In this document: positions 7,282 to 12,681 of the stretch, one piece after another
Numbering within the stretch: the stretch's first letter is position 1
Layout: every line of letters starts with the position of its first letter
Sequence record: MH791404.1
DNA length: 23,407 nucleotides
Reading direction: 5' to 3' (one strand)
Notes under the pieces: model-generated
Told to the model about the DNA's origin: nothing
What the model saw: only the letters and a program-made list of their open reading frames with translations
Databases searched by the model: none
Program-made: the position numbers and the translations under genes

Positions 7282-7554
7282 TTATTCGTCAACCATACAG
7301 TTAATCAAATGATCAATTCTACCAGCATCAAATTCTTTTATAATCTCTTTTTTCTGATATGGGGTTAGACTACTAACCATAACTCTGAAATTAAAAATCG
7401 TTAATGGTTTACCTCGCACGGTAGTAAACCCTAGTTCATTTAGAAAATCTACAAACCCAGATTGAGTATCTAGAATGTCATCACAGCCATATTTTGCCAA
7501 GATAGATGCGGTAGCTACAATATCTTTCATCAATTCAACTTTTGTAATTTTCAT
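7282..7554 (-). CDS. asiA: Anti-sigma70 protein AsiA
   Basis: 90 aa; IVATASILAKY..DDI......F..FLNELG......L....FR.MVS.LT...KK.II.EF aligns end to end with recalled T4 AsiA; syntenic downstream of 52. Confidence 0.88.
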   Translation of the reverse strand: MKITKVELMKDIVATASILAKYGCDDILDTQSGFVDFLNELGFTTVRGKPLTIFNFRVMVSSLTPYQKKEIIKEFDAGRIDHLINCMVDE

Positions 7555-7790
7555 ATTTTATAATCTTTGTCTCTTAGGATCACATCAGTTCGATTTCGAA
7601 CATCACCAATAAATCTTGCAGTACTACCACATGGAAAAATAATAATACTTACTTCATACCCAAACGCATCTTTTTGGATAGACAGTTTGACCGTTTCCAT
7701 TGAATGGTCTTTAAGGTTGATATGGGTAGGTTTTCCATCTTTTGTAAGACCAGACACTACCCCACCACCAAATAATGTCATATCAATCAT
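7551..7790 (-). CDS. Hypothetical protein
   Basis: ORF track; start moved to ATG 7790; ATGA overlap with asiA. Confidence 0.65.
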   Translation of the reverse strand: MIDMTLFGGGVVSGLTKDGKPTHINLKDHSMETVKLSIQKDAFGYEVSIIIFPCGSTARFIGDVRNRTDVILRDKDYKI

Positions 7791-10325: not shown

Positions 10326-10730
10326 CTAACTTACCATTCGACCATGGATGATAAATTTGTTTCGGATCTTGCCAGTCAACTCATGACCATTATTCATCTG
10401 TCCGTATTCTTCAATCCCAAGGAGGTGTCGGGCTTGGCTATATTTAAGGAAATATAGTTTTACGGTTTTTCCTGTCATCAGATAATCATGAACATCTTTA
10501 GCCTGTCCGGTACGTGGTTTTCGAAGTCGGATCATGGTTTCACCAAAACCACGTTTTCGCTGTTGATTTCCAACATGAGTCATATAAACAACAGAACTAG
10601 CGGGGGCAGAAATGAAGTAAAACCCCTCTTTCGTTACATCACCAGTTTCGTTAAGGTTGATACCATCAAAGTTACCAACAACAACCGCACCAGACTTGAC
10701 AAGCTCCTTTGTAGTTAAATTCTTTTTCAT
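10326..10730 (-). CDS. ndd: Nucleoid disruption protein Ndd
   Basis: T.KEL...GA.VVG, K.GFYF, VGNQ..K.GF match recalled T4 Ndd; syntenic upstream of 52. Confidence 0.82.
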   Translation of the reverse strand: MKKNLTTKELVKSGAVVVGNFDGINLNETGDVTKEGFYFISAPASSVVYMTHVGNQQRKRGFGETMIRLRKPRTGQAKDVHDYLMTGKTVKLYFLKYSQARHLLGIEEYGQMNNGHELTGKIRNKFIIHGRMVS

Positions 10731-10733
10731 ATC

Positions 10734-10944
10734 NNNNNNNNNNNNNNNNNNNNNNNNNNNNNNNNNNNNNNNNNNNNNNNNNNNNNNNNNNNNNNNNNNN
10801 NNNNNNNNNNNNNNNNNNNNNNNNNNNNNNNNNNNNNNNNNNNNNNNNNNNNNNNNNNNNNNNNNNNNNNNNNNNNNNNNNNNNNNNNNNNNNNNNNNNN
10901 NNNNNNNNNNNNNNNNNNNNNNNNNNNNNNNNNNNNGTTTTCAT
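10734..10944 (-). CDS. Probable small ORF, almost entirely inside an N gap
   Basis: ATG AAA at 10944 overlapping the upstream stop; the body is unreadable and the end is unknown. Confidence 0.35.
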
Positions 10945-11135
10945 TATTTCACCATATTAAAAATTAAAAACAAGACAATACCAAGACCCAATATTTTAAT
11001 AAACCAACCGGTGGGAGTGGTCATCATTGATTCCGGGTGATACATTTCTTCTGGTATATCTCTTTTATTGCCATAACGGTCGTGAGTATCCATCAGCCTA
11101 GGGCCTTCATCCTCATCGTATGGTTGATATCTCAT
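10944..11135 (-). CDS. Small protein with a C-terminal TM helix
   Basis: ORF track; ATGA overlap; same neighbourhood as T4's small ndd.x ORFs. Confidence 0.7.
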   Translation of the reverse strand: MRYQPYDEDEGPRLMDTHDRYGNKRDIPEEMYHPESMMTTPTGWFIKILGLGIVLFLIFNMVK

Positions 11136-11380
11136 TCACCCACCCGAAAAAATTTTCCGTCTCGAACCAGTACATGATCCAAATTATAAATGATGAACCC
11201 TTTGGTTTCATATGGGGTAACAACACGATATTCGACGTCTTTGGTATCGTGATTCACATGAAAGGAATATACCCAGTCTTTAACCTTTAATTGAAGGCTT
11301 GTATAACCAGACACAAACGGTATTACTTCCTTATAGCCTTCACTTTTCTTAATGTTTACGAAACTCTCTATAGAAACCAT
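11132..11380 (-). CDS. Hypothetical protein
   Basis: ORF track; SD GAGG. Confidence 0.7.
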   Translation of the reverse strand: MVSIESFVNIKKSEGYKEVIPFVSGYTSLQLKVKDWVYSFHVNHDTKDVEYRVVTPYETKGFIIYNLDHVLVRDGKFFRVGE

Positions 11381-11399
11381 GATTAAACCTCGTGTATGG

Positions 11400-11468
11400 T
11401 GTCTAGAATCAATTCCTATGGAGAATACAATAACATTGTATGAGATAACGAGGAATTGATTCTAGACA
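11400..11468. repeat. Perfect 18-bp inverted repeat enclosing a 7-bp inverted repeat
   Basis: TGTCTAGAATCAATTCCT (11400-11417) / AGGAATTGATTCTAGACA (11451-11468); inner ATACAAT-AAC-ATTGTAT (11425-11441). Confidence 0.9.
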
Positions 11469-11519
11469 GATTGGTGAGCTTTAGCGAACCGGCTACGCCG
11501 TACTCGTTTCACTCGTTCT

Positions 11520-11563
11520 AATTATAGATCTTCTATATAAATACTTATAGGAAATCTATAATT
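11520..11563. repeat. AT-rich 18-bp imperfect inverted repeat with TATAAATA at the loop
   Basis: AATTATAGATCTTCTATA-TAAATACT-TATAGGAAATCTATAATT, two imperfect pairs. Confidence 0.85.
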
Positions 11564-11578
11564 TGATTTCATATGATA

Positions 11579-11989
11579 CTAGCCCAGTACCTTTTTGACA
11601 AGGGCACCATCAAACAAAAGACCTTTGGCAGAAGCTGCTTTCTTACAAGCGCCCATGACCTGACCGATGTTAGAACCACCAACGAGCTGACTAAGTACCT
11701 CTTTGATATGTTCTTCACCAAACACCTTCGGAAGATAGGAANNNNNNNNNNNNNNNNNNNNNNNNNNNNNNNNNNNNNNNNNNNNNNNNNNNNNNNNNNN
11801 NNNNNNNNNNNNNNNNNNNNNNNNNNNAACCGATTGGACTTGTTCGTCAGTTACTACCTGATTACCGGAAGGACTTGCTTCACCAATTAGGGTTGTTAGA
11901 GCGTTGATACGAACTTTCCCGTGATGGGTAGAACGGTCTTCTGATTTACGGGCTTTAATTTGGTCTTTCTTAATTTGTTCAAGCAGCAT
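11579..11989 (-). CDS. GatB/YqeY domain protein
   Basis: LLEQIKKDQIKARK...LTTLIGE...VTDEQV...YLPK...NIGQVM, typical YqeY layout; middle masked by Ns but in frame. Confidence 0.8.
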   Translation of the reverse strand: MLLEQIKKDQIKARKSEDRSTHHGKVRINALTTLIGEASPSGNQVVTDEQVQSVXXXXXXXXXXXXXXXXXXXXXXXXXXXXXSYLPKVFGEEHIKEVLSQLVGGSNIGQVMGACKKAASAKGLLFDGALVKKVLG

Positions 11990-12236
11990 TTAATACACCT
12001 TTCATATATTGGATAGTTGATTTGAGGATTTCTAGATCTTCTTTGCAAGAGTTGTTTTCAACCCAAGCAATAAACGCCATAACTTCCTGAGCTTCCATAA
12101 CGTTTAGAGATTTCTTATGCATCATACGATTATAAACCGCATTGATAGAATATTGGGAAGGGGATTCATTACAAACCCACTCTTGATAACACGGGTAAAG
12201 TTCATAAAACTCATGCATNTTCAGACNAATAATCAT
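11979..12236 (-). CDS. Hypothetical protein
   Basis: ORF track; follows a promoter and SD GAGGG. Confidence 0.7.
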   Translation of the reverse strand: MIIXLXMHEFYELYPCYQEWVCNESPSQYSINAVYNRMMHKKSLNVMEAQEVMAFIAWVENNSCKEDLEILKSTIQYMKGVLNAA

Positions 12237-12264
12237 GGTAAATCCCTCTTTGTTTTATAGTTGA

Positions 12265-12293
12265 ATTTTAAACTGGCCTTTTGTTTATGTCAA
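12265..12293 (-). promoter_or_regulatory. Sigma70-type early promoter
   Basis: TTGACA-17-TAAAAT. Confidence 0.75.
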
Positions 12294-12297
12294 CGGT

Positions 12298-12681
12298 TTA
12301 TCGGATAGAAATAAAACCGTATACACCAGAAGAAGAACCAAAGGACATTGCAGCCTTCCAGTTGTCGATGTGTCCACGGACATACTTAGAAGCACCTTTC
12401 CATCCATTTCCTTTGTGAATATCACCGGTTTCCATGTTTACAAACCAAACCATCGAACCGGTAGTTTCCTCTCGTCCGTAATCGTGCATCATGATACGAG
12501 CGAATTTTCGGCCTGTTTGATATGAGTAAGAACGGCGGTTGAGATTTGCAGAGATAAAAGATTCTACATGTTCTTCGCTGTAGCGAGCCCGCATTTCAGG
12601 AAGGACGCGATTGAACCAGTTATCTTCTGANAAGGCNNTCATTTCAGCAACCATNNNTTCGATTTNNTTCANCATAGTCAT
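12298..12681 (-). CDS. Conserved phage hypothetical protein (GRKF.RI...FV..ETGDI.K...WK...K.VRG.I family)
   Basis: ORF track; recalled widespread phage motif; SD AGGAG. Confidence 0.75.
   Translation of the reverse strand: MTMXXXIEXMVAEMXAXSEDNWFNRVLPEMRARYSEEHVESFISANLNRRSYSYQTGRKFARIMMHDYGREETTGSMVWFVNMETGDIHKGNGWKGASKYVRGHIDNWKAAMSFGSSSGVYGFISIR

Follow-up and report, generated by a model that had tools for sequence, protein, structure and literature searches.

Promoter-early stem-loops (PeSLs), described in T4-type phages (Arbiol et al. 2010, PMC2839356; Comeau et al. 2014, PMC4122927), are the closest known relatives in form of the element reported here, a repeated promoter-like cassette found in the intergenic gap at positions 11381 to 11578 of a 23,407-nucleotide stretch of T4-like Aeromonas phage DNA (the window, i.e. 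the whole stretch analysed, from record MH791404.1). Each is a short, highly conserved, multicopy intergenic element of T4-like phages in which a sigma-70-type promoter is joined to a stem-loop. Both often lie directly before a ribosome-binding site and start codon, and both show signs of recombination between copies. However, PeSLs have -35 and -10 boxes with a 17-nt spacer, whereas the cassette has a -10 hexamer, TATAAT, and no -35. The PeSL stem-loop is a terminator upstream of the promoter, whereas the GC hairpin of the cassette is downstream and in the predicted transcript. PeSLs number dozens and cluster in hyperplastic regions by variable open reading frames (ORFs), whereas there are six or seven cassettes per genome at conserved, evenly spaced loci, two or three of them antisense and without an ORF. 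As every defining architectural feature differs, save that of being a conserved promoter/stem-loop repeat, the cassette was not classed as a PeSL.

Parallels are also found in phage T4 itself, where oriE uses an early-mode promoter, the origins lie in late-gene regions and no shared origin motif is known (PMC3016281). The cassettes resemble T4 oriE, oriF (uvsY) and oriG (34) in joining a promoter to adjacent unwinding-prone DNA, in being dispersed (about five or six), and in running in some cases against late genes. The T4 origins have no common motif, and oriF and oriG are MotA-dependent with an AT-rich element downstream, whereas the cassettes hardly differ from one another, the phage lacks MotA, and the AT-rich block covers the -10 and extends upstream from it. 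The cassette also lacks an oriE-type array of evenly spaced direct repeats, having only two 7-nt repeats. With T4 middle-mode promoters (MotA box at -30, AsiA-remodelled sigma-70) it shares a perfect or near-perfect -10, the lack of a -35, a conserved element near -30 and an encoded AsiA, but the -30 element is an 18-bp AT-only near-palindrome with no TGCTT Mot box, no MotA homologue was found, and the class has six members. A stable hairpin near the 5′ end or before the ribosome-binding site recalls both 5′-terminal stem-loop stabilisers, such as that of the ompA 5′ untranslated region (UTR), and the RNase III R sites of T7, although the stem at this locus is insufficiently conserved in length for RNase III.

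Judged by sequence comparison, the gap is one member, locus F, of a family of six composite regulatory cassettes specific to the Emmerichvirinae (Ceceduovirus and Ishigurovirus) phages of Aeromonas. When the genome of phage AS-zj was searched with the gap, the orthologous gap was recovered together with further copies of the part equivalent to 11504-11578, and a 33-nt core in the AT-rich part, for which the chance expectation in the window is 0.00, is 100% identical between the aligned copies. Phage Assk has exactly six copies, at 32.2 kb (-), 81.1 kb (+), 122.2 kb (-), 147.7 kb (+), 190.0 kb (-) and 219.9 kb (-), the last of which corresponds to this window. There are 5 to 7 copies per genome in AS-sw, CC2, ZPAH1, avDM6 and phage 65: the same six in CC2, seven in phage 65, and six or seven in ZPAH1 and avDM6. 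BLAST detected the cassette in 20 records only, all of Ceceduovirus or Ishigurovirus, and it is annotated in none of them. Outside these isolates, pattern scans found a true cassette only in two short metagenome contigs and none in bacterial genomes. No published description of it was found in the literature, and the cassette is apparently undescribed. A preliminary description of the window had treated the gap as a single candidate island; the island is indeed structured, but its AT-rich repeat and GC core are one of six dispersed copies, which that description had missed.

The six loci are orthologous across the Ceceduovirus and Ishigurovirus genomes checked. Placed on the annotations of AS-zj and phage 65, they are as follows.

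Locus A: before a 126-amino-acid (aa) gene; sense.
Locus B: before a DprA-like gene, between gene 24 and inh/uvsW; sense.
Locus C: between gene 54 and gene 26, in the late cluster 4-2-54-26-3-1; antisense to the genes on either side and followed by a bidirectional terminator.
Locus D: between alc and vs.1; antisense.
Locus E: just after the gene 34 terminator.
Locus F: in this window, before an 82-aa gene; sense.

The cassette serves a gene at half of the six loci, while two or three copies are antisense to their neighbours and have no downstream gene. A terminator lies upstream of the cassette at locus E only. The gaps between the six copies range from 25.5 to 48.9 kb (coefficient of variation, CV, 0.21), and spacing this even arose in about 0.1% of 200,000 trials (P ∼0.001), whether six sites were drawn at random from the 58 intergenic gaps of CC2 or placed uniformly. 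Phage 65 gave similar values, though CC2 and phage 65 count as one observation rather than two because their genomes are syntenic.

Paralogous copies within a genome share 0.80-0.85 identity, against 0.67-0.71 for orthologues of CC2 and phage 65. Since paralogues are more alike than orthologues, the copies evolve in concert or co-evolve with a trans factor. The repeat is also visible in sequencing data. In four public runs, examined as assembled contigs, the contigs break at 11517-11550 and the summed depth there is 4-8 times that of the flanks, as expected of a multicopy repeat.

Several genomes carry variant copies or arrangements. The upstream flank of copy A in AS-sw (6.3 kb) is the same as that of copy B (120.6 kb) for at least ∼25 nt past the cassette and is unlike that of copy A in CC2 and AS-zj, which suggests a gene conversion or rearrangement ending in the cassette. 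AS-zj has internal deletions in three copies, affecting the -10 and GC-rich module of copy E (16.6 kb), the promoter of copy D (58.5 kb) and the 3′ half of the GC-rich module of copy C (179.2 kb). Cassettes account for at least 7 of the 9 ambiguous positions (N) in the AS-zj record, suggesting assembly trouble or heterogeneity at the repeats. The same genome has 2 kb without annotated genes (176217-178245) adjoining cassette C, between gene 3 and a gp26-like gene. Between genes 54 and 26, phage 65 (102.15-102.35 kb) and avDM6 carry two convergent cassettes ∼140 bp apart with two GC hairpins between them, an arrangement that would produce fully complementary short RNAs. ZPAH1 has a back-to-back pair of cassettes following a terminator (110.8 kb). 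The ZPAH1 record is labelled Ishigurovirus, and its cassettes have the Ceceduovirus-type core and share 0.81 identity with those of CC2 versus 0.66 with the phage 65 copies.

Each cassette consists of an AT-rich, promoter-like module followed by a GC-rich hairpin module. At locus F the first of these, an extremely AT-rich, quasi-symmetric block of ∼70 bp, occupies 11517-11581 on the minus strand and ends in a -10 hexamer. The parts of the locus F cassette and the stem-loop that follows it are listed below.

11554-11581, minus strand: module A, the conserved upstream block TAGTATCA..TGAAATCAAATTATA, present in all paralogous and orthologous copies.
11533-11550, minus strand: 18-bp core CTATA-N8-TATAG, a near-palindrome whose centre is ∼30 bp ahead of the predicted start.
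11521-11526, minus strand: -10 hexamer TATAAT (in most copies), then a conserved TTAGAA discriminator.
11473-11514, minus strand: module C, locus F variant, a GC-rich quasi-palindrome (defined by RNA fold, family alignment and hairpin covariation).
11400-11468, minus strand: long 5′ UTR stem-loop, its perfect 18-bp stem closing a 33-nt loop within which a 7-bp hairpin is nested (11425-11441).

Module A contains TGnAATCAAAnTATA, and its TAG is also the stop codon of the upstream gene. It includes a weak -35-like TTGAAA/ATGAAA, and the opposite strand carries a TATAnT box. The 18-bp core is the same throughout the six copies of this genome, save two bases in copy D, and is followed in order by AAGATC, TATAAT, TTAGAA and module C. 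All copies in phage 65 and avDM6 have another near-palindrome in place of CTATA-N8-TATAG, as though swapped in concert. The preliminary description had given the AT-rich inverted repeat as 18 bp long; the repeat is present, but its arms are 21 nt each (11517-11537 and 11546-11566) and 86% complementary.

The only variants of the -10 hexamer are TACAGT, TACACT and TATAGT, all of which keep T-12, A-11 and T-7, the positions that sigma-70 needs most, and transcription is predicted to start near 11514. No TTGACA-like -35 box lies 16-18 bp upstream of the -10, where the hexamer at 17 nt is TATAAG (2/6 matches to TTGACA), and a TG extension is lacking. TTGAAA/TTGCAA, the sole -35-like box, goes with another -10 (TATAAG), which is poorer and lies farther upstream. 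The cassette sequence is absent from the ordinary early-type promoters of the genome (TTGAyt-N16-17-TATAAT). Two further promoter candidates were set aside. A T4-late-type octamer, TATAAATA at 11536-11543 on the plus strand, lies inside the core but is missing from the phage 65-type core, and therefore is not a general feature; at locus C this octamer faces gene 26, a late gene. A sigma-70-like TTGTCA-17-TATCAT (10/12) at 11573-11601 on the minus strand, spanning the last part of the upstream gene and the first part of the cassette, was rejected because it is not conserved in AS-zj or CC2.

Module C is 40-45 nt long across the copies, with a central stem of 4-6 G-C pairs and a loop of 3-4 nt, and in every copy its hairpin follows the -10 at a distance of 20-35 nt. 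The central hairpin is 100% paired in 14 distinct copies, with compensatory changes at two pairs, and its covariation score was reached by none of 500 shuffles. At locus F the central 4-bp GC hairpin, CGGC-GTA-GCCG (11490-11500, minus strand), lies between short complementary flanks that include the AACGAGT repeat, which is found on the plus strand as ACTCGTT at 11502-11508 and 11511-11517; GCTAAAGC is at 11478-11485 on the minus strand. These small features had all been reported in the preliminary description. The two 7-nt AACGAGT units, 9 nt apart, do not form an array, and other copies carry GCGAA GCGAA instead. A pseudoknot (GTGAG/CTCAC crossing CGAAC/GTTCG) would be possible in module C, while RNAfold gives a fully nested imperfect hairpin; covariation is silent between the two because the flanking helices are almost invariant.

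The locus F variant of module C has a 5′ flank that fits the forward family consensus and a loop and 3′ flank that fit its reverse complement, and the best nhmmer match of this variant to the canonical module is on the opposite strand. This is compatible with an inversion of the loop within a quasi-palindrome. A host-derived GC module, or a REP/REPIN-type palindrome, was considered and rejected, as the module C pattern has 0 matches in 185,579 bacterial and archaeal genomes.

The long stem-loop is found at locus F alone among the six loci. The perfect 18-bp inverted repeat (11400-11417 and 11451-11468, arms 33 nt apart) and the nested 7-bp hairpin (11425-11431 and 11435-11441) are as first described, and the stem ends 8 nt before the ribosome-binding site and 19 nt before the start codon of the 82-aa gene. 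The whole gap aligns with its counterparts in AS-zj, CC2, ZPAH1, avDM6 and phage 65, and the stem is retained with compensatory changes. It is kept in AS-zj, is 20 bp long in CC2 (T-A to C-G), consists of 10+4 bp in ZPAH1 (C-G to U-A), and shortens to a bulged 11 bp in phage 65 and avDM6 (A-U to G-C), where the 3′ arm is conserved and the 5′ arm comes from a different upstream segment. The orthologous stems always end ∼20-30 nt before the start codon and leave the ribosome-binding site uncovered. The compensatory changes across genera support the earlier proposal that the 5′ leader RNA is structured and has a long stem some 20 nt ahead of the start codon. The predicted folding energy of this leader is -44.4 kcal/mol, compared with -27.4 ± 3.9 for shuffled sequences (z = -4.4; none of 200 shuffles was as good), which excludes chance, and the structured features first noted in the gap are far beyond chance expectation. 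The preliminary description was correct in seeing here a functional structured non-coding element unexplained by any annotation.

In BLAST searches of phage records with positions 10900-12100, Aeromonas phage Assk matched at 100% and AS-sw at 99.8% identity, and identity fell stepwise through CC2, ZPAH1, avDM6 and phage 65. These relatives are T4-like Straboviridae of the subfamily Emmerichvirinae, genera Ceceduovirus and Ishigurovirus, and by these matches the source of the window is a Ceceduovirus, a T4-like phage of Aeromonas. The genes that surround the gap are all on the minus strand. The gap is 198 bp long and non-coding, as first described, with the upstream gene's stop codon (11579-11581) on one side and, on the other, the ATG that opens the 82-aa ORF at 11380. 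Neighbouring features are as follows.

11579-11989, minus strand: upstream gene, ‘tRNA amidotransferase’ in the records and YqeY-like; its stop codon abuts the cassette, and 11743-11827 is N.
11388-11391, minus strand: Shine-Dalgarno GAGG, 7 nt ahead of the ATG at 11380; GAGG or GGAG in orthologues.
11132-11380, minus strand: gene for an 82-aa protein of phrog_16703, function not known; the first gene served by the cassette.
7496-7768, minus strand: AsiA homologue, placed by correspondence with AS-zj 152804-153031 (PF09010, 73.8 bits).

Downstream of the cassette on the same strand are the 82-aa gene, a small ORF, ndd, the gene for the topoisomerase II medium subunit and, 3.6 kb on, asiA, which is transcribed in the direction of the cassette; CC2 alone has a second small ORF before ndd. 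The 82-aa protein has no Pfam match and no Atlas lead. In a profile search of the AS-zj genome PF09010 was found and both MotA domains, PF09114 and PF09158, were missing. The terminator scan found no intrinsic terminator in 10800-12300, ARAGORN gave no match, and no Rfam family was hit in the window at the gathering score, nor in 11300-11660 at E ≤ 1. The analysis covered the window apart from 10724-10937 and 11743-11827, which are N. In contigs of two public runs, 10723 is joined straight to 10938, and 10724-10937 is therefore masked sequence with no real gap in those runs.

By sequence rules, the AT-rich half of the cassette is probably a promoter. Substitutions in the -10 obey the sigma-70 rule, loci A, B and F each have a ribosome-binding site and a start codon downstream in the sense orientation, and ordinary early-type promoters do not share the sequence, all of which argue for this assignment. 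Host sigma-70 RNA polymerase would initiate near 11514 with no requirement for -35 contact, perhaps assisted by a hypothetical dimeric factor at the palindromic core (∼-30). Because no -35 contact would be needed, the cassette promoter could remain active once the phage AsiA blocks ordinary -35-dependent early promoters, and the presence of AsiA together with the absence of both MotA domains points in the same direction. The GC hairpin at the 5′ end of the transcript would shield the RNA from 5′-end-dependent decay, as other 5′-terminal stem-loops do, and the long stem ahead of the ribosome-binding site would likewise protect processed read-through transcripts; the covariation of the GC hairpin, the leader fold and the compensation of the long stem across two genera all favour such a role. 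Downstream are the 82-aa gene, ndd, the gene for the topoisomerase subunit and more. For this mechanism as a whole (-35-independent firing past AsiA, message-stabilising 5′ hairpins, and a second hairpin guarding processed read-through RNA), which we prefer to the alternatives below, we regard the balance as even.

Several observations weigh against this scheme. Lacking both a -35 box and a TG extension, the predicted promoter would be weak unaided, and the 70-bp identity between copies is more than promoters need. Simple gene expression does not explain copies C and D, which are antisense to both neighbours with no ORF downstream, nor does it predict even spacing round the genome. Sequence-specific RNA recognition sits awkwardly with the locus F module, whose loop and 3′ flank match the canonical module in reverse complement. 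Finally, the public-run contigs gave no transcript ends, and two possible RNA runs gave only short contigs (198-239 nt) over the 82-aa gene.

The spacing and the antisense copies would fit a reading in which the six cassettes are the replication origins of Emmerichvirinae phages, of the transcript-primed (R-loop) type known in T4, with a shared consensus made up of the -35-less promoter, meltable DNA and the GC hairpin. A short promoter RNA, its GC-rich 5′ part hybridised beside the most easily melted DNA, would then prime the leading strand, in addition to the promoter role. The T4 record has promoters at oriE and oriG with primer RNAs that run opposite the late genes 5 and 34. Copies E (after gene 34), C (in the gene 2/4/53/5 cluster), B (gene 24/uvsW) and D (by vs.1) lie in the neighbourhoods of T4 oriG, oriE, oriF and oriC, respectively, though with six evenly spaced sites such nearness is only weakly significant. 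Single copies are partly deleted in AS-zj, as redundant origins would allow. The cassettes of CC2 rank 1, 2, 3, 4, 7 and 8 among the least stable 60-bp duplex windows, but this measure failed its control, T4 oriE, oriF and oriG being unremarkable (P 0.4-0.9), and duplex stability was therefore not counted as evidence. Moreover, the unwinding element of T4 origins is downstream of the promoter, whereas GC-rich DNA takes that place in the cassette and the AT-rich block is over and upstream of the promoter, and a consensus would set these origins apart from those of T4, which have none. An origin function is on balance rather unlikely.

The signs of exchange between copies raise a further explanation, that the cassettes are chiefly recombination substrates of the PeSL kind, i.e. 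promoter/stem-loop repeats at which exchange shuffles the intervening genes, as documented for PeSLs in RB49/phi1, T4/PST and KVP40/nt-1 (PMC2839356, PMC4122927). Concerted evolution (paralogues at 0.80-0.85 and orthologues at 0.67-0.71 identity), the flank of copy B upstream of copy A in AS-sw, and the deletions at C, D and E of AS-zj, which have end points inside the cassette, would all fit. However, only six copies exist, at the same evenly spaced loci in two genera and not in hyperplastic regions or by variable ORFs, and their stem-loop is downstream rather than upstream of the promoter. Exchange follows from any repeat and leaves the upkeep of the repeats unexplained, making recombination an improbable primary role.

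The preliminary description had suggested an RNase III-type stem, and the 18-bp stem could be an RNase III processing site like the R sites of the T7 early region. Such a site would cut polycistronic early RNA before the 82-aa gene, and the stem is suitably placed in Ceceduovirus, where it is perfect, 18-20 bp long, between two same-strand cistrons and 19 nt before the start codon. The 10+4 bp of ZPAH1 and the bulged 11 bp of phage 65 and avDM6 fall below about two helical turns, and a T7-type internal loop is not present. Given that stem length varies, RNase III cleavage is unlikely as a conserved function, and we assign it little probability at this locus.

It is very improbable that the element acts only as double-stranded DNA, as a binding site or cruciform (repressor/operator, nucleoid protein or topoisomerase site) with no start of its own. 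The quasi-twofold symmetry of the AT-rich module, the concerted change of the palindromic core between genera, and the quasi-palindromic GC module with a locus F variant matching the opposite strand are compatible with such a site, but transcription is indicated by the way the -10 varies and by the constant spacing to the ribosome-binding sites of three loci. An 18-bp stem enclosing 33 nt of loop would also make a poor cruciform, and no candidate binding protein was identified. The suggestion that the gap holds a packaging signal is without any support.

In practical terms, none of the 20 Aeromonas phage records containing the cassette annotates it, and it interrupts short-read assemblies at six places. 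If the cassettes were also origins, they would provide the first consensus origin sequence in the T4 superfamily, and the number, spacing and firing of origins would be open to simple deletion tests. We know of no initiation route for T4-like phages that have AsiA but lack MotA once AsiA blocks -35-dependent promoters. A small class of -35-less promoters with a conserved palindrome at -30 is a candidate for the missing mode, and hints at an activator still to be found.
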